This document shows positions 21,253 through 64,000 of a DNA stretch of 64,000 nucleotides, in pieces; position 1 is the stretch's first letter; each line of letters begins with the position of its first letter. The notes below the pieces were generated by a model. The model made no database searches, was not told the origin of the DNA, and saw nothing but the letters and a program-made list of their open reading frames with translations. Location of the stretch: sequence record MW879341.1. One strand, 5' to 3'. Made by a program: the position numbers and the translations under genes.

Positions 21253-21274
21253 GGTTACCTCATATTCGATTCAA

Positions 21275-21298
21275 TTTCAGATATATATTATCTCTGTG
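21275..21298 (+). promoter_or_regulatory. Phage early-type promoter
   Basis: TTTCAGATATATATTATCTCTGTG; resembles the phiKZ early consensus TATATTAC; seven similar copies in the window. Confidence 0.7.
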
Positions 21299-41445: not shown

Positions 41446-41470
41446 TTTTGAGATATATATTATCTATAGG
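41446..41470 (+). promoter_or_regulatory. Phage early-type promoter
   Basis: TTTTGAGATATATATTATCTATAGG. Confidence 0.6.
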
Positions 41471-41477
41471 TAAAGTG

Positions 41478-42236
41478 ATGCAAATATATCGCAAAGGCAC
41501 CGACAGCTTTGGTGCTGTCCAATTAGTACCACAGGTCTTCTATCAGTTCTGGGACGGCGATATCGACGCAACTGACGTAGGTCGTTACCCGAAACCGTTG
41601 GACCCACTCCCAGAGATCAACTGGGAGATCTTAGTCTCCGCATCGGAATGGCGCGAACGCATCGTAAGTGCCGATACTGACAACTCTATCAGTATGTCCA
41701 AACTGCGCGAGATTCCTGACAACTATATCGAAGCCGCAATGCTGAATTTGATTTATGGGTATCCAATGACCTATAACACAATGAACGCTAACTACTTACC
41801 CCTGCGTGTCGATACAGACTTTAACGTCAACCCAATCGGCTACCCGGCTTACGCTATGGTTCTGCTAGCTATCAAGACACTGATTCAGGACTTGGTTGCT
41901 AAAGGTACCGTAGAGGCACAGAGCCGCGCTGAGACGCTGCGTCAGCTATTACGCCACCTTACCTACGTTGCTATTCAGATCGTGTTAAACAACACGCCTG
42001 TGAAGCCTAACGGTGTGGTGTTCGTGGGAGCATTGACCAGTACTGAAAACTCTGGGTGCGATTTAGTCTATTACGATAACGAAGCGTACACTAAGTGGAT
42101 TGCTGCTGGCGGTAACGAAGGTTTAGCCTGCGCTGAGTGGGTACTGAACCAACGTAGTCCAGACGACCAGACGATCACCGGTCAGATTGCTATCCTCAAC
42201 CGTTGGAAGCCTCTGACAGATATCACCCAATCATAA
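41478..42236 (+). CDS. Hypothetical protein (about 252 aa)
   Basis: AGGT RBS then ATG 41478. Confidence 0.65.
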   Translation: MQIYRKGTDSFGAVQLVPQVFYQFWDGDIDATDVGRYPKPLDPLPEINWEILVSASEWRERIVSADTDNSISMSKLREIPDNYIEAAMLNLIYGYPMTYNTMNANYLPLRVDTDFNVNPIGYPAYAMVLLAIKTLIQDLVAKGTVEAQSRAETLRQLLRHLTYVAIQIVLNNTPVKPNGVVFVGALTSTENSGCDLVYYDNEAYTKWIAAGGNEGLACAEWVLNQRSPDDQTITGQIAILNRWKPLTDITQS

Positions 42237-42239
42237 CCC

Positions 42240-42269
42240 AGGTAGGACTTCGGTCCTACCTTTATGCCG
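42240..42269 (+). terminator. cUUCGg hairpin + TTTATGCCG terminator
   Basis: AGGTAGGAC-TTCG-GTCCTACCT-TTATGCCG; core identical to the copy at 52239. Confidence 0.78.
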
Positions 42270-42985: not shown

Positions 42986-43010
42986 TTTTGAAGTATATAT
43001 TACCTCTGTG
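42986..43010 (+). promoter_or_regulatory. Phage early-type promoter
   Basis: TTTTGAAGTATATATTACCTCTGTG contains the exact TATATTAC. Confidence 0.72.
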
Positions 43011-49870: not shown

Positions 49871-49882
49871 CTCAATCTAAAG

Positions 49883-49904
49883 TCAGATATATATTACCTC
49901 TATG
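49883..49904 (+). promoter_or_regulatory. Phage early-type promoter
   Basis: TCAGATATATATTACCTCTATG contains the exact TATATTAC. Confidence 0.72.
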
Positions 49905-52238: not shown

Positions 52239-52268
52239 GGTAGGACTTCGGTCCTACCTTTTATGCCG
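52239..52268 (+). terminator. cUUCGg hairpin + TTTTATGCCG terminator
   Basis: GGTAGGAC-TTCG-GTCCTACC-TTTTATGCCG. Confidence 0.78.
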
Positions 52269-52309
52269 TTTCATCATTTTTTCAGATATATATCACATTC
52301 ATGAATAAA
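52266..52309 (+). promoter_or_regulatory. Extended early-type promoter, copy 1
   Basis: CCGTTTCATCATTTTTTCAGATATATATCACATTCATGAATAAA. Confidence 0.7.
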
Positions 52310-52331
52310 CAAACAAAATGGAGTAACCACC

Positions 52332-52550
52332 ATGCTTAAATCTAGCTCAGAGTTCTTCGGGTTCTTTGTTGCTCTGTATGCAGCCTACTGTGCTCAGGAT
52401 GCTGCGAACGACTCAATGGAAGTAGGTGAATCTGAAGTTAGTACCCAGGCTCGTGTGTTAGTGCGTCTGGTTGTTGCATCCGTCACATTTGCTGGTTGTG
52501 CGGCTGTAGTAAAAGGTTTCAACGATTACCTGTTCGGTAACGATCAGTAA
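52332..52550 (+). CDS. Small two-helix membrane protein (72 aa)
   Basis: Two hydrophobic segments; GGAG RBS. Confidence 0.7.
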   Translation: MLKSSSEFFGFFVALYAAYCAQDAANDSMEVGESEVSTQARVLVRLVVASVTFAGCAAVVKGFNDYLFGNDQ

Positions 52551-52583
52551 TATACTCTCACTCATTTATTAAGGAATACCATT

Positions 52584-53063
52584 ATGTCAATCTCTAAAGA
52601 AACTATCTTCACCGCAGTTGGCGTTGTTGCTCTGTTAGGTCTGGGTGCTTGGATCGGTTGTAAAGTTGCTGAGAAAGTAAACGAAGTGATCAAAGAACCA
52701 GAAGCAAAGGACGAAACACCTGAAGCAGCGCCAGTTGTCAACTATGCTGACATCTTCGCCGTAGTGTGGGGCACAGTGTCATTCGAAGAAGCGCTGTGTG
52801 CTGATACTGAGGACGGCATGAGTCCTGACCTGTATGGTGCATTACTGGATGTTGTCTTAGATTACATCCACAATGCAGATCTGTCTGATCGCCATAACCG
52901 TAAACACTTCCCGTTCTTAGATTCCGTTGAGAATGTCGAAGTGCGTACTCGCCTGAAAGAAATTGCAGGCAAAGCGATCAACGTTATCTACAGGGATAAC
53001 AGTGACGTCGATAGTCTGAAGGCGGTAACGCTGGACGATATCAAAAACGCATTAGCGTCATAA
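52584..53063 (+). CDS. N-terminally membrane-anchored acidic protein (159 aa)
   Basis: IFTAVGVVALLGLGAWIG TM; TAAGGAATACC leader. Confidence 0.72.
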   Translation: MSISKETIFTAVGVVALLGLGAWIGCKVAEKVNEVIKEPEAKDETPEAAPVVNYADIFAVVWGTVSFEEALCADTEDGMSPDLYGALLDVVLDYIHNADLSDRHNRKHFPFLDSVENVEVRTRLKEIAGKAINVIYRDNSDVDSLKAVTLDDIKNALAS

Positions 53064-53106
53064 CAGCATAAAAGCCACTCTACCCAAAAGGTAGAGTGGC
53101 TATGCT
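53064..53106. terminator. Bidirectional terminator
   Basis: CAGCATAAA-agccactctacc-caaaa-ggtagagtggct-ATGCT between convergent genes. Confidence 0.78.
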
Positions 53107-53115
53107 TACGCCTTT

Positions 53116-53439
53116 TTATTTTTGTTCTGGTACATTGAACTGAATAATCAGGAGTCCTTCCAGAGCAGTACAACTACCGCTCAGTTGGATTTGAATCAGG
53201 TTGGTGTAGTTAGAGTTAGACAGCATCGTCGAATGGTTAGCACCACTGTAGACTACCGTCGCACCCAGTAAACTATATTCACCTTCCACGCCCAAACGCC
53301 AGTCGTCACCAGTAGTCTTACGAATGATCTCAAAGAGTTCGCGAGGTACTGCTGCTTCTGGGTCGGCTTTCACCTTCAACAGTTCAGCGTAATCAGCTGA
53401 GAAGTCGAAGGGGTATGCGTACACATATGCTGGATACAT
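53116..53439 (-). CDS. Stand-alone C-terminal domain of the paralogous virion-protein family (107 aa)
   Basis: YAYPFDF, LLGATVVYSG and ALEGLLIIQFN match only the C-terminal half of the array members. Confidence 0.68.
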   Translation of the reverse strand: MYPAYVYAYPFDFSADYAELLKVKADPEAAVPRELFEIIRKTTGDDWRLGVEGEYSLLGATVVYSGANHSTMLSNSNYTNLIQIQLSGSCTALEGLLIIQFNVPEQK

Positions 53440-53445
53440 TATCTA

Positions 53446-54354
53446 TTACCCCGGGATGACTTCGTCGTCTTTTGGCGGAATCGTCAAATCGAACGGTTCG
53501 TTGAAGTGCAGCATTAACAGACCGCGCATTTTCACACTGTCTTTAGACAGCTGAATCGCAACCACGTACTTGTAAGTAGGGTTACCGGCAATGGCAGATG
53601 AGTTCAGTGCTGCGTAAGTGATCTTCGCACCTGAGAGGCTGTAGTCGCCAGCAGCCATAGAGAATGCAGGGTTAACATATTTCTTCAGGATGTCGCAGAT
53701 TGACTGGTCTACCTCGGATTTAACCGTCAGCTTAGACAGGGTAGCAAATTCCGGCGTGAAGCTAATCGGATAAGTCGCTACGTAAGCCTGTTGAGCTGTA
53801 AGATCTGCCGATGGGTAGACGAAGCCCGACAGATCAACTTTCTTTACTGTGTCGGTAGCAACATAGCCAGTCAGTGAACATTTGAAATCAAAGCCCACAT
53901 TAAACTGGTAGTTGTCTGCGATTGGGTCGACACGGATGGTAAAGGTGCTGCCGTCATCTGGGGTAGTTACGTCACCCTCGATGATTTCGTTAGGCGACAA
54001 GCCCATACCATAGTAAATGTTGATGAACGGGACCAGCTGTGACTTTTTGGTGATCTTAGGGATAGCCATCACCGAGTCTTTACCACCCTTACGGACAGAG
54101 ACATACGTTTCAAACTTCTCGCGATTATACAGCAAGTAGTTAGAACCGCCGTAGGCCACACCGTCGATACCAGTTACACGGATAGCAGTATCTTTGGTAG
54201 TGGCAGAACCACGCCAAGTGCCAGTCAGTGAAGCTGGGCGTGATACTGTTACATTGGTATCGGGAACCATGGTTGGAGAAATACCATTCAGTGAAGAATA
54301 GTTAACCAACAGTCGACGGATGAAGGACTCGCCCCAATAGTTACGTCTTAACAT
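53446..54354 (-). CDS. Paralogous virion/tail-associated protein, array member (302 aa)
   Basis: YGGSNYLLYNR; LSGFVYP; GLLMLHFN. Confidence 0.72.
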   Translation of the reverse strand: MLRRNYWGESFIRRLLVNYSSLNGISPTMVPDTNVTVSRPASLTGTWRGSATTKDTAIRVTGIDGVAYGGSNYLLYNREKFETYVSVRKGGKDSVMAIPKITKKSQLVPFINIYYGMGLSPNEIIEGDVTTPDDGSTFTIRVDPIADNYQFNVGFDFKCSLTGYVATDTVKKVDLSGFVYPSADLTAQQAYVATYPISFTPEFATLSKLTVKSEVDQSICDILKKYVNPAFSMAAGDYSLSGAKITYAALNSSAIAGNPTYKYVVAIQLSKDSVKMRGLLMLHFNEPFDLTIPPKDDEVIPG

Positions 54355-54366
54355 TTAAGGCTCTCC

Positions 54367-55263
54367 TTATGCGTTATACGGCAGGAACAACTGAATACCA
54401 CCACGGCCCGCTGAAGCGGCGTTAGCGCAATAAGTAGCATTCAGGTTGATAACTGCCATTGCGTTCGTGTCGTTGTAGTAGACATCTGCGGGGTCTGCGC
54501 CTGCCGGTGTGTTATTAAGAGACAGGTTAGCGTTGTAGATGTTGAACGAACGATTAGACGTGTTGTTATATTCCCACGGATCTCCCGTGAAATCACGCAA
54601 CGCGGCTGCAAGTGCCGACCACGAAGCTGAGCTGTTCTGACTGTATACGGTCATCAGAGAAGGCTTGATAATCGTGAAGTCTAAGCCGCGATAGTAGGTG
54701 GTAAAGTCGTGTCGCGGGTCAACGGGTGGTACCAAGTTTGCCAGGGTAGATTCCTGACGAGATACCATCGTTTCAAGACTCGGCGTACCACGGAACCACT
54801 GCACCGACGGAATCTTACCAATGAACGCCAAACTGGCTGTGTTGGATGGAATACCCAACACGCTGGTTTGCGTCCAGCCCGTATAGTTGGCGTTGTTGTT
54901 AAAGTTACCGTTCGTCCACTCCGATGCGTCAATCGACATACCGTACAGCGAGTTAAACAGTGAGCGGAGAGCTTCGTACGTGGTAGCGGTATAATGAGTA
55001 AGGACAACTTTAGTATCCTTAAACAGATTCGCCAGGTCGATACGGTTGTAGCGGAAAGTAATCAGTCCGCGATAACCGGCACCCTGCACACCACGCATCA
55101 CTACGGAGGTGTTGAACGGCGCTGCCTCGGTTGGAGTCAGTACCGTTGGACCTGCGTGAACCACAAAGGTGTCTTTCGACACCTTGTAGGGCAGATCAGG
55201 GTTGTCCTTATTAATCAGATCATACAGCAGATCTAAGGACGGTTTCTGATATAAGCCAGACAT
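54367..55263 (-). CDS. Paralogous virion/tail-associated protein, array member (298 aa)
   Basis: GYRGLITFRYNRIDL; YYRGLDF. Confidence 0.72.
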   Translation of the reverse strand: MSGLYQKPSLDLLYDLINKDNPDLPYKVSKDTFVVHAGPTVLTPTEAAPFNTSVVMRGVQGAGYRGLITFRYNRIDLANLFKDTKVVLTHYTATTYEALRSLFNSLYGMSIDASEWTNGNFNNNANYTGWTQTSVLGIPSNTASLAFIGKIPSVQWFRGTPSLETMVSRQESTLANLVPPVDPRHDFTTYYRGLDFTIIKPSLMTVYSQNSSASWSALAAALRDFTGDPWEYNNTSNRSFNIYNANLSLNNTPAGADPADVYYNDTNAMAVINLNATYCANAASAGRGGIQLFLPYNA

Positions 55264-55277
55264 TAAGTCTACCTCTC

Positions 55278-56120
55278 TTAACGGTTGTTGTAGTGGTAGT
55301 AAGCCACACCGACGATGTTGTCAGCGACGATACCGGTCTGGACAAACACACGGTCGTAATCGCGGTTTGCACCGGCTACGCTGGCCGTGGTTGCATCAGA
55401 GATATAGTTACTGTTCGCAGCACGCGGGTAGTCTGGTACACCACGGTCGGTCAGAATCTGACGGAGCGAATCCCAGTTGTTACTGTAGTTCGCCCAGCTA
55501 CCGAAGTAGTTCTTGTAGTCACTGAAGTCGATACCCCAGGTCAACAGGCCGGCAGAGTTCAGGTCATCCACTTTCTTATCGGCGTGATTCAACACGGTCA
55601 ATGCGGTGGCGGTGATCTGAATACCCAGGTCTGGTTTACCACGATATACGCGCAGATTGACTGCTCCGATATATGCCGGTGAGGTCGGAACTGCGGTGAT
55701 ATTTGAGTTCTCGATTCGGTCTGCCTGACTAGGGTAGCTGAAGCCATTGTTCTGAATATCCCAGGTATTCAGATTCAGACCAACTTGCAGACAGATCTGT
55801 GGTAGCATCTGGTGGATGTTACGTCCGGCATAGTTCTGCAACTGAACGTAGTTGTTCAGACCGTTCAGAGTATCGCTTGGCAGGATAACCTTGGACAGAT
55901 CGATACGGTTGTAGAACACCACAAACGAACCCATGTATCCGTCACCCTGCTGACCACGAATACGCGCTGAGGTATTATGCATACCGTTCGCAGCGTTAGG
56001 CGTCACCGCAGTGATCGCCTCAATCGTACAGTTGTCGTTAGACAGGGGTGGTTGGATCTGGGGGTTAGCTGCCGCAATCAGGTCATAGACCAGAGCACGG
56101 GAGTCCTTACTGTATAACAT
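55278..56120 (-). CDS. Paralogous virion/tail-associated protein, array member (280 aa)
   Basis: GYMGSFVVFYNRIDL; GVAYYHYN. Confidence 0.72.
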   Translation of the reverse strand: MLYSKDSRALVYDLIAAANPQIQPPLSNDNCTIEAITAVTPNAANGMHNTSARIRGQQGDGYMGSFVVFYNRIDLSKVILPSDTLNGLNNYVQLQNYAGRNIHQMLPQICLQVGLNLNTWDIQNNGFSYPSQADRIENSNITAVPTSPAYIGAVNLRVYRGKPDLGIQITATALTVLNHADKKVDDLNSAGLLTWGIDFSDYKNYFGSWANYSNNWDSLRQILTDRGVPDYPRAANSNYISDATTASVAGANRDYDRVFVQTGIVADNIVGVAYYHYNNR

Positions 56121-56130
56121 AACTTACCCC

Positions 56131-57012
56131 TTAACCGATTTCAGACGGGTCGAGTGGTTTGCTGTAGTGCAACAGCATCTCACCACGAACGTTGGTGGTT
56201 TTGGTCGTATCGAGTGTCAGCGCGATAACGTACTGATAACGCTCGTTGTTGGCGTACTGGCGATCCTTAGCAGGACCGTTGTAAGCTACAGTAGCGTTAG
56301 TCAGGTTAGCCGGACCGGCCGCCAGACTGTCACCGATAACCCACGGGTTAGCAACTGACGCGTACGGCTGTTTACCATTGATGATGGCCAGGAGTGAGTC
56401 ATCCAGCTTCGCACCCACTGCAATACCTTTAAGGGTATCGTAGGAATCGCTGAAGTCAGCACCATAGACCAGCGCCTGTCCGAGACGAACAGTGGTGTCT
56501 TCAGATACTGGGTAGACGATACCATCCAGTGAGGTTTTCTGAACGATGTCGTCCAGTACATCATCACCTTTGGTCAGGAAGAAGGTCCACTCACCAATCC
56601 AACCCAGCGAATCCGGTGCAGCTTTCAGAGTAACCTGAGCTACCTCGTTTTCATAGGTAATCGGTTGGTCAACGATGTCACCCGGTACGAAGTTCAAACC
56701 GTATACGGTATTGAACGCCGATGCCAACTTGGCAGTGGTGTCGGGTTGAGGACCTTTGATACGATCGCCGATCATGGTAACCAGGTCGTTGAGGTCCAGA
56801 CGGTTATAAAGGAATACGTTGGTACCAGTCCAGGTAGCACCGGCATTAGCAGTGATACGGATAGCAGTATTCTGACTGATATCCTTACCGTTCCACTTGC
56901 CATTCGTCGGCTGAGGCTTACTGAACGTCATTTGGGACATGACAACGTTCGATCCATTTAAGGAGTTAACGTTATCAATGATAGTTTGTTTAACGTCACT
57001 ATAGAGTGCCAT
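56131..57012 (-). CDS. Paralogous virion/tail-associated protein, array member (293 aa)
   Basis: WTGTNVFLYNRLDL; LDGIVYP; GEMLLHYS. Confidence 0.72.
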   Translation of the reverse strand: MALYSDVKQTIIDNVNSLNGSNVVMSQMTFSKPQPTNGKWNGKDISQNTAIRITANAGATWTGTNVFLYNRLDLNDLVTMIGDRIKGPQPDTTAKLASAFNTVYGLNFVPGDIVDQPITYENEVAQVTLKAAPDSLGWIGEWTFFLTKGDDVLDDIVQKTSLDGIVYPVSEDTTVRLGQALVYGADFSDSYDTLKGIAVGAKLDDSLLAIINGKQPYASVANPWVIGDSLAAGPANLTNATVAYNGPAKDRQYANNERYQYVIALTLDTTKTTNVRGEMLLHYSKPLDPSEIG

Positions 57013-57021
57013 TAGTCAACC

Positions 57022-57819
57022 TCATAAGTAATAATGCAGATAGATCGTGCCGACATAATTCGGATCATCGACCCCGGTGATAGTCGAAACGCGCGCGTAT
57101 TTCTTATTAGCGGTGGTCACTTGCGAGGTATTCGTAAAGTGAGTTAACTGCGCACCACTAAGTTTGATATCTCCTAAACCACGCTCTTTCAGTATCTGAC
57201 GTAACGCAGCATTATTAGCATTGTTAGTCAACACGCCCGCCGGAGTTGTGCGGATAGCGTATTGGTCAGAACTGCAATCCCAACCGTAGGTCAGGAGATC
57301 AAGGCACTTACGTCCGTCTGGGTCTTGAGGGTGTTTAAGCACCGTCAATTGACGCGCACGCAGGAGAGCCAGGTTACGAACCATTGGGATAATCTTAACC
57401 AATACACGCCCTGTGTACTGAATGGACTTCGACCCAGGCGTTAACCAGAAATTCGTACCACCCGTATACACGTCGGTGCGGAAATCGTTGGGGTCTAAGT
57501 TCAAACCGTAGTTGGCATTGATCAGTTGAGACGCCTCACGCATTGTCATACTTCGGTTAACCGATAAGACAGGCGGTTGGTTCTTAAAGAGCGTTTGTAA
57601 ATCCAGTCGGCGCACGTTGACGTTGATATCACCAACCAAACCATGCGATTGTCTACCAGTCAAGGTTACAGTCGTATTCGGTTTAGTGGCACTACGTTCA
57701 TTGAGTGCTGTGACTTTACGGACGCGTACGTTGTTCGGGGTCAGTGGAATCTTTGGATTGTACGCAGTGTTGATACTATCGCAAAGGTTCTCCAGCGGCG
57801 TTTTAGAATAAATAGGCAT
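57022..57819 (-). CDS. Paralogous virion/tail-associated protein, array member (265 aa)
   Basis: GLVGDINVNVRRLDL; GTIYLHYY. Confidence 0.72.
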   Translation of the reverse strand: MPIYSKTPLENLCDSINTAYNPKIPLTPNNVRVRKVTALNERSATKPNTTVTLTGRQSHGLVGDINVNVRRLDLQTLFKNQPPVLSVNRSMTMREASQLINANYGLNLDPNDFRTDVYTGGTNFWLTPGSKSIQYTGRVLVKIIPMVRNLALLRARQLTVLKHPQDPDGRKCLDLLTYGWDCSSDQYAIRTTPAGVLTNNANNAALRQILKERGLGDIKLSGAQLTHFTNTSQVTTANKKYARVSTITGVDDPNYVGTIYLHYYL

Positions 57820-57833
57820 TCGTTACCCCTTTA

Positions 57834-57855
57834 GTGGGGAGCTTTCACTCCCCAC
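57834..57855 (-). terminator. Hairpin inside the array (partial terminator or processing stem)
   Basis: gtggggag-ctttca-ctccccac between 57862 and 57819. Confidence 0.45.
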
Positions 57856-57861
57856 CGCTGA

Positions 57862-58794
57862 TTACGCGTTGTAGTGCAGGTAGAGATCGCCCGCGAAGTT
57901 GGTGCACTTGGTGTCATCCAGAGTGAACACAACTACGGTGTTGAAGTTGGTGTTAGCGTTTGCCTGCACTTCCAGTTCAACCGGGTCAGTAGACGGGGTT
58001 GACGGGTCGGCACGAGTAGAACCTGCGAACTTGATGGTCGCGCCACGAACGTTGTAGTCCGCTGCGTCATCACCGGCGTGCCACAGTTCAGGCACAACTT
58101 TGTTCAGCTCTTTGGCCAGTGCGGTATCTTCGATAGCGCCGCCAGTTGCCAGGGTAGACAGGAAGGTACGGATGCTGTTGCAGTCTACGCCGTAGGAGTA
58201 GATGTAAGCCTGACCTTTCATGGTACCGTCAACTGGGTAGTGCAGACCATCCAGACGAGTTTTGGTTACAACCAGGTTCAGACGCTCACCAACGTCAGCA
58301 TCTTCGCCGACAGTAACATCCAGCACACCGAAGTAAGCCAGAGAGTCATCAGCGATAGTGATGGTAGCGTGAGCAACCGGTGCAGCTTCGGTCAGTTCAG
58401 CAACAGTTGCACTTACCACTTCTTTCTTGTCGATGGCCAGGCCGTAACGGGCATTCAGGCGGTCTATCAGATCCAGGGTGGTTTTAGCGCCTTTAACATC
58501 GAGGTTAACGGCAATGTTCTTGAACAGTTTGCTGATGTCCAGACGATCGTACGCCAGGGTTACGGAACCCACGTATGGAGAACTACGAGTCGCGGTACAC
58601 AGCAGTTCGGTGTTCCAGTCTTTCTTGACTTCACCTTCCGCTGGCTCACCTTCAGTTGGTACAACCACAGCCGGCTTACCGAACACAACCTGAGTGGTGT
58701 TGATATCGATCGAGAGTTTAGTATCAGGATCGGTGTTGGTTTCGTTAACCAGATCCAGGACCAGAAGGTTGGATGCTTTGTTATACTTACCCAT
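57862..58794 (-). CDS. Paralogous virion/tail-associated protein, array member (310 aa, strongly optimised codons)
   Basis: PYVGSVTLAYDRLDI; LDGLHYP; GDLYLHYN. Confidence 0.75.
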   Translation of the reverse strand: MGKYNKASNLLVLDLVNETNTDPDTKLSIDINTTQVVFGKPAVVVPTEGEPAEGEVKKDWNTELLCTATRSSPYVGSVTLAYDRLDISKLFKNIAVNLDVKGAKTTLDLIDRLNARYGLAIDKKEVVSATVAELTEAAPVAHATITIADDSLAYFGVLDVTVGEDADVGERLNLVVTKTRLDGLHYPVDGTMKGQAYIYSYGVDCNSIRTFLSTLATGGAIEDTALAKELNKVVPELWHAGDDAADYNVRGATIKFAGSTRADPSTPSTDPVELEVQANANTNFNTVVVFTLDDTKCTNFAGDLYLHYNA

Positions 58795-58806
58795 TGTTCA
58801 TTTCCT

Positions 58807-59652
58807 TTAGATGTTTAAGGGACTGTTGTATTGAATGTAGACGCGCCCTGCCAAGTTAGTGCAATACAATGCTAACTCAACAATGCAGACCGTATCGAAG
58901 TACGGGTCGGTAGGGAGATCTGACGTATTTGGCCCATGGTAAACCACAGTGGACTCAAACAAGTTCCAGTTGGCCGGTGAACGGAAGATCGTCCATTTGT
59001 CACCCGTTACCGAGAGGATGTTCATCAACTCAGCAGTGGTGATGTTGGTACCACGTTTAGCATACGGTCGCATCGCTTCGGTGAAGTCAGTGCGATATGC
59101 GTAAATCGGTGCCTGTCCGTTATTCGTATTGAAGTACGGATAGTCGAAGAGGCTAGCAGTGGATTGCGGCTCGATTACATCTGACAGAATCGCGTCGCCT
59201 GCCACAGTACGCATGGTTAGCGTACCAACCCAAAGCAATGAGTTATCAAGTAACTCAAACGTCACACGGTTGTTTACTTTATCGACTGGTGCTAAACGCA
59301 CTTCATCTTTAGTAAGCTCGATACCGGTGAATTGCTTCAGAGCGCCCAAACAGTCGTGGTTATTTTCCACAGTGATTGGAGAGAGTGGCAGTTGGAAATC
59401 GTTCTCACTGTTTACACCGACGATCAGCGAGATATCGTAACGGTTGTAGAACAGGTCGACAAATCCGTAAACCTTTGCGTCGTTACCAGCACGCAACTGG
59501 ATGGCAGTGTCCTTATCTGGGAACTGCGCCAGTTCTTCAGGTTCCAGTGCACGAGGACCTAAGAACGTCATCTCATCAACGGTAAGGCTGACTTTATAGA
59601 GAGCGTTCAGGTAATCGAGGATATACTGTTTTCCATTAGGATACAGGAACAC
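58807..59652 (-). CDS. Paralogous virion/tail-associated protein, array member (about 281 aa)
   Basis: GGAGG RBS then GTG 59652 (MFLYPNGKQYILDYLN); YGFVDLFYNRYDI; GRVYIQYN. Confidence 0.72.
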   Translation of the reverse strand: MFLYPNGKQYILDYLNALYKVSLTVDEMTFLGPRALEPEELAQFPDKDTAIQLRAGNDAKVYGFVDLFYNRYDISLIVGVNSENDFQLPLSPITVENNHDCLGALKQFTGIELTKDEVRLAPVDKVNNRVTFELLDNSLLWVGTLTMRTVAGDAILSDVIEPQSTASLFDYPYFNTNNGQAPIYAYRTDFTEAMRPYAKRGTNITTAELMNILSVTGDKWTIFRSPANWNLFESTVVYHGPNTSDLPTDPYFDTVCIVELALYCTNLAGRVYIQYNSPLNI

Positions 59653-59653
59653 G

Positions 59654-60469
59654 TTAAACCTCCGGAATCCAAGGAATAAGTAAAGACCCAACCCAGTCAG
59701 CAGTTTCTAATTTGTCAATACGTAATACCATCGTATCGCCAGACTTCTCCTGCGTACAGGTACCGCCTTTGATGTTGACTTCACCAATCGCTACAGCACC
59801 GGCGTCTTTGTATACAATGTTGAGGTTAACCACACCATTGATCGCATCAGCCAGATCGGCGTTAGTAGCACGCCCGCCATAGAAGTTGGTAAATGCGCTT
59901 TGGATCTCAACGAAGTTATACCCCCACGCGACATATTCCAGTCGACGCTTACCCGTTTTAGAGAATGGTTCTTTAACAATGTCCAGACCTTGTGCAGTCA
60001 CTAAGGTGGCAATGTTCGGACGAGACTTCACCACACGCACGTCAACAGAACCCGACCACATCAAGCAGCTTGGTTTTGTTTCCAGCGTGACGATATAGTC
60101 ATCACCGAGGTCTTTTACCGAGACATCCACAATGTCGTCTTTGGTTAAGAAGACACCGTAGGTTTTATAGAATGCCGGAAGGATATCAGACAACCACGAT
60201 GCGCCTGTGAACTGAACCAGTAGGGTCTGATTCTCAAACGCGTGGTCTAACGAAAGACGTTGATATTCTACATCTACCGTACCCTGATACCCCTGCCGCA
60301 TAAGAGCATAAACACGAACTCGGGCATTTTGCAATGCACCGGGGGTGGTTATCTCCTGTGGAATCCCAAAGCCTACATTATTCAGACTTAGGGGATTGAC
60401 GACGATGGTGTTCTCCGTATTAATGGTATCCAACATCGTGTCGGTGGAGCTTTTCTTGTACATACTCAT
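59654..60469 (-). CDS. Paralogous virion/tail-associated protein, first array member (271 aa)
   Basis: GYQGTVDVEYQRLSL; AWGYNF. Confidence 0.7.
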   Translation of the reverse strand: MSMYKKSSTDTMLDTINTENTIVVNPLSLNNVGFGIPQEITTPGALQNARVRVYALMRQGYQGTVDVEYQRLSLDHAFENQTLLVQFTGASWLSDILPAFYKTYGVFLTKDDIVDVSVKDLGDDYIVTLETKPSCLMWSGSVDVRVVKSRPNIATLVTAQGLDIVKEPFSKTGKRRLEYVAWGYNFVEIQSAFTNFYGGRATNADLADAINGVVNLNIVYKDAGAVAIGEVNIKGGTCTQEKSGDTMVLRIDKLETADWVGSLLIPWIPEV

Positions 60470-60529
60470 AGTGAACCCTTCAATGTGAATAGTAGTAGGG
60501 CAGTGTTCTTCAACATATTATCGGGGATA

Positions 60530-60573
60530 CCGTTTCATCATTTTTTCAAATATATACCACCTCTATGTATAAA
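60530..60573 (+). promoter_or_regulatory. Extended early-type promoter, copy 2
   Basis: CCGTTTCATCATTTTTTCAAATATATACCACCTCTATGTATAAA. Confidence 0.68.
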
Positions 60574-60593
60574 CAAAGAAGGAATATACAGAA

Positions 60594-60818
60594 ATGAGCT
60601 ATGCACGCAGTTTTGTACGGTACCTAGCCATGGCTGGAGCAGCGGCTGCGGCCGGCGCTGCGGCTAGTTCAGCTAAGGACTACGCTAAAAGGCAAACCGA
60701 CCACGAGTGGGTCCACGATGGTGTAAGGCTAGTAACTTACGCAGCAGTAATCGTAGCAGCAGGCATCGGCGTAGATCGCGCCATTAACGAATTATTCTCA
60801 GACAGCACAAGGAAATAA
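60594..60818 (+). CDS. Small Ala-rich two-helix membrane protein (74 aa)
   Basis: LAMAGAAAAAGAAA and LVTYAAVIVAAGIGV. Confidence 0.7.
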   Translation: MSYARSFVRYLAMAGAAAAAGAAASSAKDYAKRQTDHEWVHDGVRLVTYAAVIVAAGIGVDRAINELFSDSTRK

Positions 60819-60821
60819 ACT

Positions 60822-61010
60822 ATGTCATTCATGACCTCAGTAGTAAGTATGATCGGCGGAGCAATTGTCGGTAGTACCGTAACAGCGCCACTGGTTAAAG
60901 AAGACAACACTCAGAAGCAACAACTCATCGCACAGGCTGCAAACTGCATCGTGTCTACCGTTGTTGCTATCTGCCTCGATGACTACCTCCAGAAACATTT
61001 CGATAAATAA
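60822..61010 (+). CDS. Small two-helix membrane protein (62 aa)
   Basis: AAGGA RBS; two hydrophobic segments. Confidence 0.68.
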   Translation: MSFMTSVVSMIGGAIVGSTVTAPLVKEDNTQKQQLIAQAANCIVSTVVAICLDDYLQKHFDK

Positions 61011-61020
61011 GGAAAATATC

Positions 61021-61203
61021 ATGCACAAGATTGTTAAATGCGTATTAGCAGCAGCCACCGTTACCGCAACTTTCACAGCAGTAGCTGCCCGTGAAGATGG
61101 TGATGAGCCTACCGGTAAAGATATGACCATCGGCGCAGCAGCGGCCGCAGTGGTTGGCTTAGGTCTGGCCTGGTTAATCGCTGCCACTGAAAGCGATAAG
61201 TAA
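61021..61203 (+). CDS. Small two-helix membrane protein (60 aa)
   Basis: TAAGGA RBS then ATG 61021; IGAAAAAVVGLGLAWLIAA. Confidence 0.68.
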   Translation: MHKIVKCVLAAATVTATFTAVAAREDGDEPTGKDMTIGAAAAAVVGLGLAWLIAATESDK

Positions 61204-61246
61204 AACCCAAACTCAAACACAACTCTGTTAAATAAGGAATACCATT

Positions 61247-61444
61247 ATGTCAATGAACGCTCACACTCAGTATATGTTAGACCAGATCTCAGCAGCCATC
61301 GGTTCAGCAGCAGGATTAGTAGCAATGCGCGCTACCATGGAAAAGCGTGGTGAAGTGGATTGGGTCTGTGGCACTGTCGGTATTGTAACCGGTGTCACCG
61401 TAGGTGGTGCGTTGATGTTACTGCAACGCAAACTGTTCGACTAA
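61247..61444 (+). CDS. Small two-helix membrane protein (65 aa)
   Basis: TAAGGAATACC leader; GTVGIVTGVTVGG glycine-zipper pattern. Confidence 0.7.
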   Translation: MSMNAHTQYMLDQISAAIGSAAGLVAMRATMEKRGEVDWVCGTVGIVTGVTVGGALMLLQRKLFD

Positions 61445-61455
61445 TCTCTCCCAGT

Positions 61456-61484
61456 AGGAGGCCCTCTGTGGGCCTTCTTTTTTT
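61456..61484 (+). terminator. Intrinsic terminator
   Basis: aggaggccc-tctgt-gggccttct-TTTTTT. Confidence 0.72.
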
Positions 61485-61501
61485 ATACTAAGGATAACAG
61501 A

Positions 61502-62149
61502 ATGAAACATTACGACTTAGGGTTTGGCACTACAGACGACCACGTAGAAGAACTGAACTACCATCGTGAGCGTGGCGACCTTATCTCACTGGCGAGTTAT
61601 TGGGTGTATCTACTGAACGACACCGCTGACCGTAAACTCACTAACGAGTTAGTTCGTACTTATCCTCAGATCTTACTTACCCGCGATTACGTAGCTACGC
61701 CGGAGTGGATCGATATCACACTACCGGACTGCACTATCCGTCTGTGGAACCTGTATAAGATTCCAATGCTCGATTACGGCGACATCTACGGATATCCTAA
61801 GTGCTGTCAGGAATGGTTTGATCGTCGTACCGATAGCATTATGTCTGGCCACAGTGCAGACGCGGGACTCGGTTTCCAGGCATTAGACGGTACTGGTTAT
61901 TTAGCGTGTCCTAAATGTCGGACTAAAACGGCAGAAGAACAAATTGCCGCCATTATGGAAAATCGCATTATACCACTACCGTTCCCACAGGACGAGTGTG
62001 AACCCTTTGTACTCACTGAGCATGTCTTACGCTTAGGTCGTGAACTCGGTGAGAACCTGAAAGAACATAAAGCCAAATACCCAGACTTCAATAAGTCTAT
62101 TCTTTTACCATATGGAGAAAATCATGGGATTCGAATCATCTTCAAATAG
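61502..62149 (+). CDS. Cys-rich putative zinc-binding protein (215 aa)
   Basis: YGYPKCCQEWF...GTGYLACPKC...NR..PFP. Confidence 0.65.
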   Translation: MKHYDLGFGTTDDHVEELNYHRERGDLISLASYWVYLLNDTADRKLTNELVRTYPQILLTRDYVATPEWIDITLPDCTIRLWNLYKIPMLDYGDIYGYPKCCQEWFDRRTDSIMSGHSADAGLGFQALDGTGYLACPKCRTKTAEEQIAAIMENRIIPLPFPQDECEPFVLTEHVLRLGRELGENLKEHKAKYPDFNKSILLPYGENHGIRIIFK

Positions 62150-62798
62150 TGGCAGTATCGTATTTAAAGGTAAGCCACTTACGCTTGACCAATTTGCCAA
62201 AGTGATTGAGTTGAGTGAGTGTGACGGTAACGCTACAATTGAATCACCTTACGATACCGGCATCGTGCTGCGTGACTTGGTTGAAGCGCTTGACAATCCA
62301 GAAGGGTTGGAAATCGTTATTCAGGAACCAACACCAACTGACTGGGGAACGGCTACTTTCATACGCGATGGGGTCGAACTCTATTCAGGCGGCCTGGACG
62401 GGGAGATCGGTCTGGTTGATGCTGCACGTATACTGGATGGCGTTGGTGACCTGGAAGTAATGATGGCGGTTCAGGAACAGAGTTGGTCTGGTAGTGAAGT
62501 GGGTGGTTGTTCTACATTCCTCTCCCCGCACTACGAACAACACACCGACACTGTAACGGCTCTGGCTGAGGCCAAGGCTATCAGTGATGCAATCGCCGCA
62601 GGTGACGATGAAAAGGCCGGAGCGTTGATTGTAGAGCCTCTGTTGCGTAGTCTGAATAACATTCAGGATGAGGATGCTCGTAGCGCAGTTGCGGCGTACG
62701 TTTACAGTAACGTGCCGATGGCAATGATGGATAGCTTTATGACGCCAGAAGACATCGAACGTACGATGAACGACGACTGTGGTTTCTCTCAAGACTAA
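62124..62798 (+). CDS. Acidic hypothetical protein
   Basis: GGAG RBS then ATG 62124. Confidence 0.65.
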   Translation: MGFESSSNSGSIVFKGKPLTLDQFAKVIELSECDGNATIESPYDTGIVLRDLVEALDNPEGLEIVIQEPTPTDWGTATFIRDGVELYSGGLDGEIGLVDAARILDGVGDLEVMMAVQEQSWSGSEVGGCSTFLSPHYEQHTDTVTALAEAKAISDAIAAGDDEKAGALIVEPLLRSLNNIQDEDARSAVAAYVYSNVPMAMMDSFMTPEDIERTMNDDCGFSQD

Positions 62799-62807
62799 GA
62801 GGTGGCT

Positions 62808-63065
62808 ATGTTAAAGAAAACGATTAAGGTCAACAAGATCCGACAGATTGTTACAACCTTAGACGGCGATGGTAAGACACCACTGTTCCCTAAGGGTTCT
62901 GTGATTGCTGCGGTGTTGATGTATGAGTCTGTCGATTTAACGGACTTCTATAAAGCTGAGTCAGATGGTCCATTGCAGATTGAAACTGAGATCACGCATT
63001 CTGGTCGATTGGTTCAAGCACTCATCTACGGTAAACATACGCAGTTGTTACTTCAACCTAAATAA
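62808..63065 (+). CDS. Hypothetical protein (85 aa)
   Basis: GAGG RBS then ATG 62808. Confidence 0.6.
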   Translation: MLKKTIKVNKIRQIVTTLDGDGKTPLFPKGSVIAAVLMYESVDLTDFYKAESDGPLQIETEITHSGRLVQALIYGKHTQLLLQPK

Positions 63066-63070
63066 AGCAA

Positions 63071-63116
63071 ACCCTCACCGTTAATTCGGTGGGGTCTGTT
63101 ATGCCTATTCTTTTTT
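63071..63116 (+). terminator. Hairpin + TTATGCC + U-tract terminator
   Basis: accctcaccg-ttaatt-cggtggggt-ctgTTATGCC-tattcTTTTTT. Confidence 0.72.
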
Positions 63117-63124
63117 ACACTTTA

Positions 63125-63169
63125 CCGGTTTCATTAAATTTTCAGATATATATGACCTTTGTGAATAAA
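63125..63169 (+). promoter_or_regulatory. Extended early-type promoter, copy 3
   Basis: CCGGTTTCATTAAATTTTCAGATATATATGACCTTTGTGAATAAA. Confidence 0.68.
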
Positions 63170-63200
63170 GCGAAATAAACCATACGCCCTAGGAGAAATT

Positions 63201-63326
63201 ATGAACAACATGTCCTCTGGAACTATCGTTATTCTGGCCTCACTGGCTAGCTTCACAATTGTCGCTTGTGTCGGTATCGTAGCGCAAGCAATCGAACGTA
63301 CTTCTAAGCAACAAGCAACTAAATAA
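63201..63326 (+). CDS. 41-aa single-TM peptide (not in ORF track)
   Basis: AGGAG RBS; MNNMSSGTIVILASLASFTIVACVGIVAQAIERTSKQQATK. Confidence 0.65.
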   Translation: MNNMSSGTIVILASLASFTIVACVGIVAQAIERTSKQQATK

Positions 63327-63359
63327 TAACCACTCCACTTTAAAATAAGGAATACCTAT

Positions 63360-64000
63360 ATGTCATCTAACAACATCAACTGGTTCGGCGTAGCAGTAGC
63401 AGCAGCAGTAACTAGCCTGGGTATCTACGCAATCGTACGTTCATTCGCTGACGACGAGATCGAAGTAAAACCAACCGCGAGTGAAACTAAAACAGACTCA
63501 GTGAAGTCTGAGGTGTATGCTAAACGTGCGGTCAACGATCTCTATCGTGACCTACTGGATTCAGCAAAAGCAATGTACGGTGACCTCCAGAGCGATACCA
63601 CCCTTACTAAAGAAAGTAAGAAAGAGAAGTTCGAAGCACTGATGGTTTCACTGGTAGAAGCACATCTGAACATTAACGACTGCAAGCTGGACGAGAACCG
63701 CACCTACGTTAAGTGGTTGCGTGACATGCGTATCGAGAACCCTGAGTTCTGGGAACGTGTTATCCGTAAATCAGCAGACACTGGTGCAGAAGGCGCTAAG
63801 TCTATCTACGCAATCGTCGTGGCAATTAACTTCAGCAACATGAATGCTCCGGTAGAAGCGGTTGCTTTAACTGTGGCTGACTTAAATACTTGCCTGACTG
63901 TGGAAGATGCTAAAGCGGTTGGTCTGGAGTTACCAGAAGGTGAGTACACCGTTACCGTTGAGAGCATTGTTGATATCCCTGCTAAGGTAGTATTCCTGAG
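63360..64000 (+). CDS. N-terminally membrane-anchored protein, truncated by window end (not in ORF track)
   Basis: TAAGGAATACC leader; MSSNNINWFGVAVAAAVTSLGIYAIVRSF...; open to 64000. Confidence 0.72.
   Translation, partial: MSSNNINWFGVAVAAAVTSLGIYAIVRSFADDEIEVKPTASETKTDSVKSEVYAKRAVNDLYRDLLDSAKAMYGDLQSDTTLTKESKKEKFEALMVSLVEAHLNINDCKLDENRTYVKWLRDMRIENPEFWERVIRKSADTGAEGAKSIYAIVVAINFSNMNAPVEAVALTVADLNTCLTVEDAKAVGLELPEGEYTVTVESIVDIPAKVVFL

Follow-up and report, generated by a model that had tools for sequence, protein, structure and literature searches.

An extended subclass of putative early promoters ahead of small membrane-protein genes in Erwinia phage pEa_SNUABM_54

Do the near-identical DNA blocks that precede small membrane-protein genes in Erwinia phage pEa_SNUABM_54 form a promoter class of their own, and which polymerase reads them? 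pEa_SNUABM_54 is a giant phage of the fire-blight bacterium. The stretch analyzed here (the window, 64,000 nucleotides (nt)) is record 62001–126000 of its 272,635-bp genome (MW879341.1), with identical sequence, so that a window position equals the record position minus 62000. Every gene in the window is annotated as ‘hypothetical protein’. The original prediction, made from the DNA letters, had described three blocks in this window as promoters of the injected virion RNA polymerase (RNAP) of a nucleus-forming phage, each followed by membrane proteins only. Our sequence analysis suggests that the blocks are probably a conserved, distinct subclass of virion-RNAP early promoters, each heading a short membrane-protein unit.

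The three blocks and their promoter family

The pattern TTTCAT-N4-TTTTCA-N-ATATATA occurred exactly at window positions 52269, 60533 and 63129, all on the + strand, where shuffled sequences gave a chance expectation of 0.01 matches. The blocks that had been placed at 52266, 60530 and 63125 are thus present. One further site, at window 41436, matched the pattern with 2 mismatches. The three copies agreed pairwise at 40, 36 and 34 of 46 positions (−37 to +8 around the predicted start). We refer to them as extended early promoters P1 to P3:

52266–52310, + strand: P1, with CCG, TTTCAT (−34 to −29), TTTTCA (−24 to −19) and core G-ATATATA-TC-AC; predicted start G 52303, then AATAAA
60530–60574, + strand: P2, with core A-ATATATA-CC-AC; predicted start G 60567, then TATAAA
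63125–63170, + strand: P3, with CCGG, TTTCAT, TTTTCA and core G-ATATATA-TG-AC; predicted start G 63163, then AATAAA

These three blocks are real but do not stand alone, being part of a five-site subclass within a 21-site family. With a weight matrix on the shared core, 21 sites in the genome, every one of them on the + strand, reached 29.5 bits or more; no other site on either strand exceeded 12.5. The family consensus comprises TTTCA, R-ATATATATTAY, CT..GT and G, with six bases between the core and the G. This G, the start predicted from sequence, was conserved at AR9-like spacing (6 nt past the element) in 21/21 sites. All 21 sites were intergenic and co-oriented with the next gene, and the annotated gene start lay ≤62 nt from the core in 17 of them, 82–98 nt away in two and ~240–255 nt away in two. 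Many come directly after a GC-rich hairpin and TTATGCC, and one lies 61 nt upstream of the gene for chimallin.

The family core R-ATATATATTAY-N6-G nearly equals the early promoter consensus of the AR9 virion RNAP, AAATATATATTAT-(6N)-G+1, which comes from mapping by differential RNA sequencing (dRNA-seq) and primer extension; transcription from it is insensitive to chloramphenicol and needs no new protein synthesis (PMC5312081). Starts in phiKZ and phiR1-37 also lie 6 nt beyond an AT-rich element (PMC5312081), and a review reports that an AT-rich −10 motif precedes early operons in every RNAP-encoding jumbo phage (PMC7598289). We did not obtain a + strand call for a sigma-70-like promoter (−35/−10 hexamers, 16–18 nt spacing) at the three window blocks. 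Because the family is close to the AR9 consensus, is intergenic, has a member before chimallin and drew no sigma-70 call at the three window blocks, we read the blocks as very probably early virion-RNAP promoters, with predicted starts at window 52303, 60567 and 63163; the genes behind them would accordingly be early. The predicted role of an injected virion RNAP fits both the AR9-like consensus and the polymerase that the phage encodes.

The gene content of pEa_SNUABM_54 agrees with the premise of a nucleus-forming phage. It encodes a homologue of the virion RNAP beta subunit (phrog_3148, E = 0) and a second RNAP beta-like protein (phrog_3295). Gene 00270 is chimallin (PF25677, 133 bits, cutoff 27; phrog_4795 ‘nuclear shell protein’, 9.5e-85), which makes the premise reasonable. 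The beta subunits annotated in its closest sequenced relatives, phage RAY and others, were only 31–35% identical to the pEa_SNUABM_54 protein (tblastn), and on this measure pEa_SNUABM_54 is a deep-branching chimallivirus. The genome of Erwinia phage RAY contained almost no copies of the family core. TubZ_C_2 was called in relatives at a position syntenic with a pEa_SNUABM_54 gene; this gene, the counterpart of a relative’s match to PhuZ-type tubulin, is at record 146970–147968, outside the window and three genes downstream of the fourth promoter unit described below.

Other readings of the block sequence were also considered. An overlapping sigma-70 promoter (TTCA.A-N17-.ATAAA) was not called by the promoter scanner. 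A leaderless mini open reading frame (ORF) at the conserved ATG/GTG was rejected, as the AR9 spacing would leave only its G transcribed. In IMG/VR, the exact block gave 36 single, scattered, chance-like matches and no multi-copy contig. In P1 (window 52270–52305), an upstream TTCAT and a downstream ATGAA form a 5-bp inverted repeat around the core, 31 bp centre to centre; the repeat was weaker in the other block copies.

A five-site subclass and the genes behind it

A genome-wide search returned two further exact block copies, at record 144206 and 182652, as well as four weaker matches; each of these lies on the + strand. The resulting subclass has five sites (P1 to P5), with core positions at record 114285, 122549, 125145, 144222 and 182668; the other 16 family sites are ordinary. 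The ordinary promoters in the window are:

49880–49904, + strand: ordinary-class early promoter with core ATATATATTAC, preceding a 291-aa soluble protein
about 21274–21298, 41446–41470 and 42986–43010: other ordinary promoters, located by the weight matrix

Three features marked the subclass. Each site carries a perfect (C)CG-TTTCAT at −37 to −29, so that an upstream TTTCAT sits at about −34, one helical turn from the other TTTCA; identity over −37 to −25 was 0.80 within the subclass compared to 0.38 among ordinary sites. Positions −9/−8 read TC, CC, TG, CC or CT (non-TT in 5/5), whereas 15/16 ordinary sites have TT. The predicted initial transcribed sequence is G-AATAAA or a close variant.

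The subclass also differed in the gene that follows. The first gene behind all five sites (g105, g116, g123, g145, g202) encodes a predicted membrane protein of 41–74 aa, with maxima of 1.7–2.65 in 19-residue Kyte-Doolittle windows (KD19), which we used to call transmembrane (TM) segments. A small TM protein was thus the first product at 5/5 subclass sites and at 0/16 ordinary sites (P = 4.9e-5, Fisher test). The DNA pattern by itself had picked out the two subclass copies outside the window, and small TM genes follow both of them, which serves as an out-of-sample test. Among ~37 annotated proteins of ≤102 aa, 16 had a hydrophobic window of ≥1.6, and 8 of these 16 are in subclass units. Terminators enclose most of these short units, whose later products are also, for the most part, predicted to be membrane-anchored. 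The features of the units in the window are:

52239–52267, + strand: upstream operon terminator, an 8-bp GC-rich hairpin then TTTTATGCC, whose CCG tail abuts P1
52332–52550, + strand: g105, 72 aa, two-helix small membrane protein (KD19 maximum 2.27) with conserved R45 and C-terminal D-x-LFG
52584–53063, + strand: g106, 159 aa, N-terminal TM helix (6–30), acidic linker and all-helical soluble domain (47–159)
53073–53101, bidirectional: terminator hairpin at which module 1 and the convergent DUF7941 array (minus strand) both end
60594–60818, + strand: g116, 74 aa, Ala/Gly-rich helix and TM helix
60822–61010, + strand: g117, 62 aa, two hydrophobic segments
61021–61203, + strand: g118, 60 aa, two hydrophobic segments
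61247–61444, + strand: g119, 65 aa, one clear TM segment
61456–61488, + strand: terminator-like hairpin (9 bp) with T-run/TTAT, closing the four-gene P2 unit
63073–63106, + strand: terminator hairpin with TTATGCC, ending the g120–g122 block upstream of P3
63201–63326, + strand: g123, 41 aa, single-TM protein (KD19 maximum 2.65)
63360–64000, + strand: g124, 225 aa, N-terminal TM and soluble domain, extending 37 nt beyond the window end

The P1 unit (module 1) holds g105 and g106 and ends at the bidirectional hairpin. The P2 unit holds g116–g119, four hydrophobic proteins of 60–74 aa, followed by a hairpin and T-run at 61456–61478; three soluble proteins at 61502–63065 lie beyond this terminator and outside the unit. 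P3 heads g123, g124 and the soluble g125, then a terminator. The P4 unit has a conserved hairpin with TTTTATGCCG within its 5′ untranslated region (5′UTR), then g145, and the P5 unit consists of g202 and then a hairpin with TTATGCC. We are confident from the hydropathy windows, which bear out this part of the original prediction, that the products are membrane proteins. In modules 1 and 2, the claim that membrane proteins alone follow the blocks was accurate as far as the first terminator, but not in module 3, which includes a soluble 102-aa protein just past the window.

Relatives at several distances were drawn from Logan metagenome assemblies (labelled L067–L073). In relatives with saturation at synonymous sites (proportion of synonymous differences, pS, 0.56–0.85), blocks orthologous to P1, P2, P3 and P4 (4/5 sites) have retained all of the subclass features: −34 TTTCA, TTTTCA, non-TT core and G-AAT start. 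Orthologues were present for P1 in L070, L068, L071, L073 and L072, for P2 in L068 and L069, and for P3 in L067. The P2 intergenic stretch was the best-conserved 100 nt in an 11-kb comparison (95%, compared to a typical 55–90%). In three distant relatives, members of the g106 family were 21–26% identical (HMMER, 1e-9 to 7e-5) and had the same architecture. Their syntenic promoter reads TTTCA(G/T)-N4-TTTTCA-GATATATA-AG-A(Y)...GTG-AAT and precedes a gene of 71–73 aa (73 aa in two, 71 aa in the third). In L071 and L073, the ordinary promoter at 49880–49904 has an orthologue two genes upstream, and this one retains the TT core (...ATACA-TT-A(Y)). Because the subclass features and the ordinary TT are both kept in distant relatives, the distinction between extended and ordinary sites is, judged from these orthologues, older than the near-identity within pEa_SNUABM_54. 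With a promoter–gene association that is non-random and conserved in relatives, a co-regulated early membrane-protein set, as originally proposed, is a fair description.

The proteins diverged at different rates. g105 was 74–76% identical to close relatives and 39–41% to distant ones, with an Arg in the second helix and the C-terminal D-x-LFG invariant in the distant family members. Identity in L068 was 85% for g116, 66% for g117, 60% for g118 and 34% for g119, the fastest-evolving of the four. A g124 homologue (P0002, 67% identical) lies directly behind the orthologous P3 promoter. The ratio of nonsynonymous to synonymous change (dN/dS) was 0.08–0.19 across g105, g116, g117, g106 and g124 (g105, 0.12–0.19; g116, 0.08; g117, 0.13; g124, 0.13), and the small ORFs are, on this measure, protein-coding genes under purifying selection. 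Gene content turns over: g123 (41 aa) and the soluble g125 are absent from L067, and g145 is shortened to its 41-aa TM part in another relative.

Similarity searches placed these proteins in no family and gave no link to membrane remodelling, the early vesicle, exclusion or defence. Pfam and PHROGs at E ≤ 0.01 gave no match for ten module proteins (g145 and g202 were outside that scan), and PHROGs gave none for g125, g146 and g203. The ten thus include no Pfam or PHROG match to a holin family or to the T4 Imm/Sp-type exclusion family; their neighbours are DUF7941 array genes and ORFans. A phage collection searched with the modules (megablast, blastn, tblastn) returned only pEa_SNUABM_54 itself and no homologue, and the ESM Atlas returned rows at chance level only. 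An AlphaFold2 model of the g106 soluble domain (47–159) was a helical bundle with a predicted local distance difference test score (pLDDT) of about 90 for residues 50–159. With this model, Foldseek against PDB and BFVD found nothing at E ≤ 0.001, and the best Z in the wide VIA search was 6.3, under the noise level quoted for helical proteins. Comparison of the g105 family with g116 gave a full-length alignment (hhalign Prob 45%, E 2e-4), suggesting that the two may be distant paralogues. The similarity once noted between modules 1 and 3 (AVTLDDIKNAL and ALTVADLNTCL) was not supported: BLASTP found nothing, tblastn found no second place in the genome, and the profile–profile comparison gave Prob 4% over a different segment.

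Alternative readings of the blocks

Several observations weigh against the reading of the blocks as a distinct early subclass with membrane products. Start site, timing and class difference are predictions from sequence, every public run that was listed being of DNA. In its upstream element the subclass grades into the ordinary class, about half of whose sites carry a weaker TCA at the same place. A site at record 194603 is intermediate, with a TC core, AATCAG-TAAA-ATTTCA upstream and a soluble 232-aa first gene product (phrog_3921). This site shows that the ordinary and extended classes are not perfectly discrete, and counting it as subclass changes the association with small TM genes to 5/6 versus 0/15 (P = 2.9e-4). 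The TM calls come from hydropathy only and from no dedicated predictor, and g125, g146 and g147 are soluble, so not all products are membrane-bound. No protein of the set has a recognisable function. The spacer bases are identical among pEa_SNUABM_54 copies (CATT in P1, P2 and P4; TAAA in P3 and P5) and differ between orthologues. As spacers are shared by paralogous copies yet variable across orthologues, part of the near-identity of the blocks is, by this pattern, copying or gene conversion (concerted evolution) rather than constraint. We regard it as about as likely as not that regulation of the five sites differs from that of the ordinary ones.

The spacers could be taken further, to mean that the blocks belong to the ordinary class of early promoters. 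Duplication or gene conversion of a cassette of terminator tail and promoter would then account for the added similarity, the blocks would have no regulation of their own, and their association with membrane genes would be historical. Two pairs of blocks, P2 with P4 and P3 with P5, are almost identical, the 5′ edge of the block has a CCG(T) that is the tail of the terminator motif, and the possible distant paralogy of g105 and g116 points the same way as the spacers. However, apart from that possible pair the downstream genes have no detectable mutual homology, so there was no recent whole-module duplication. At orthologous sites, the −34 TTTCA, non-TT core and G-AAT are kept down to 21–26% protein identity, while the ordinary promoter keeps TT, and the association of 5/5 versus 0/16 would require five independent coincidences. 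We consider this explanation unlikely.

The altered core also bears on the identity of the polymerase. A non-virion RNAP could read the subclass, or the virion RNAP could do so with an accessory protein on phased TTTCA repeats, in which case the genes would be middle or continuously expressed ones rather than immediate-early. The core deviates at two positions, and for the AR9 virion RNAP even one deviation, at one particular position, is reported not to be tolerated (PMC5312081). The TTTCA repeats are ~10 bp apart, with a third copy 20 bp further upstream in P4, and T-G(+1) would also be compatible with the late TATG motif of phiKZ (PMC7598289). Against this, the ordinary class has exactly the same remainder of the core (R-ATATATA, the A at −7/−8 and the spacing to G), and a separate motif for the second polymerase was not definable in this genome; another reader is therefore improbable. 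It is less probable still, to the point of being hard to credit, that the small proteins serve lysis timing (holin, antiholin or spanin-like) instead of modifying the envelope early. They resemble holins in size, in their charged tails and in having one or two TM helices, but no endolysin or spanin neighbour was seen and no holin matched the ten scanned proteins in Pfam or PHROGs. In addition, the genes share a promoter family with chimallin and occupy five dispersed loci rather than one lysis cassette.

Surrounding features and place in phage biology

The terminators extend beyond the subclass units. Genome-wide, (T)TTATGCC comes after ~27 GC-rich hairpins, counting both strands, and the arrangement often takes the bidirectional form GGCATAA-hairpin-TTATGCC (hairpins in the window include 52239–52267, 63073–63106 and 42217–42268). 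TTTATGCC occurred 15 times on one strand and 10 times on the other, compared to about 4 expected per strand. Terminators of hairpin and TTAT, and others resident in 5′UTRs, have been described for phiKZ (PMC10914365). Units of pEa_SNUABM_54 likewise end in a GC-rich hairpin with TTAT(GCC), and P4, like phiKZ P112/T102, holds a terminator inside its 5′UTR (PMC10914365); the pEa_SNUABM_54 terminators differ in being predicted from sequence. Because the motif matches that of phiKZ, the predicted terminator signal is conserved across very distant chimalliviruses. In the P4 5′UTR (record 144240–144290), two mutually exclusive hairpins are present, the second a terminator-type stem with TTTTATGCCG, and the whole leader is conserved in three relatives. 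By analogy, the P4 leader looks like an attenuator or short-RNA generator of the phiKZ P112/T102 kind.

Between modules 1 and 2, the minus strand of window 53116–60469 carries nine tandem DUF7941 paralogues (precomputed Pfam matches on the relatives’ copies). Gene lengths in this array are identical in relatives, and extended-promoter membrane modules lie on both flanks, distant relatives included. Within window 60439–60539, the ~70 nt between the array start (60469) and P2 are 95–100% identical in relatives, compared to only 70–85% in the flanking genes, and are probably the array’s own promoter or leader. Downstream of the P2 unit, g120 (215 aa, window 61502–62149) has conserved Cys pairs, CCQ.W and CP.C, whose pattern suggests a zinc site. 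It is 76% identical in one relative and has no family match, and no distinct locus related to it was found in viral contigs. Phage genomes near-identical to pEa_SNUABM_54 (98.7% identity to window 58001–64000; one 246-kb contig) occur in food and animal-gut metagenomes from two studies, and more diverged relatives of window 58001–64000 occur in other food and fermentation runs, all as DNA.

The promoter family and the terminator motif are already known kinds. Like the virion-RNAP early promoters of the phiKZ/AR9 type, the family has an AT-rich element of ~11–13 nt near −10, in tens of copies co-oriented with early operons, and a conserved purine, here the predicted start, 6 nt downstream, in a phage that encodes a split multisubunit RNAP. 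The pEa_SNUABM_54 subclass differs from them by its −34 TTTCAT, altered −9/−8, A-rich start and one kind of product. A virion-RNAP promoter subclass that is conserved and coupled to membrane-protein units appears to be new; none of this kind is described in PMC7598289, PMC10914365 or PMC5312081.

We propose that, during the first minutes of infection, the injected genome would serve as template for transcription of the subclass units. Their expression would share a level or timing unlike that of other early genes, set by the altered core together with the upstream element and the leader, and their products would insert into the host inner membrane. The likeliest role would be envelope take-over, for example superinfection exclusion or the blocking of a membrane-acting host response. 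T4 Imm and Sp and the SPO1 host-takeover protein gp56 offer a precedent, as small proteins with one or two TM helices that are made from early promoters and act on the host envelope, excluding a second phage or blocking cell division. The early genes of T4 and SPO1 use host RNAP. The ten scanned module proteins have no sequence or family similarity to Imm, Sp or gp56, and the analogy is functional only. By this analogy, an action on the host envelope (exclusion, take-over or defence) is a tentative suggestion. Action at the early vesicle is speculation and improbable; the reviews of nucleus-forming phages that we searched make no mention of phage-encoded membrane proteins of this vesicle. Equally remote is a dedicated membrane regulon of a chimallivirus clade, in which products of the first minutes would form, sustain or open the lipid vesicle around the injected genome, or pass the genome to the chimallin shell, with special promoter and leader giving separate timing or dose.

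In nucleus-forming jumbo phages, all early promoters are regarded as a single class, and the majority of early genes lack a known function. A membrane-linked promoter subclass would provide a handle, from sequence alone, on a functional group of these genes. It yields testable candidates for envelope or vesicle functions (g105/g106, g116–g119, g123/g124, g145 and g202), and the natural variants at −34, −9/−8 and +2 to +7 could help dissect how a sigma-less virion RNAP reads its promoters. Overall, the pattern suggests that the phage turns on a small set of membrane-targeted proteins as a group very early in infection.

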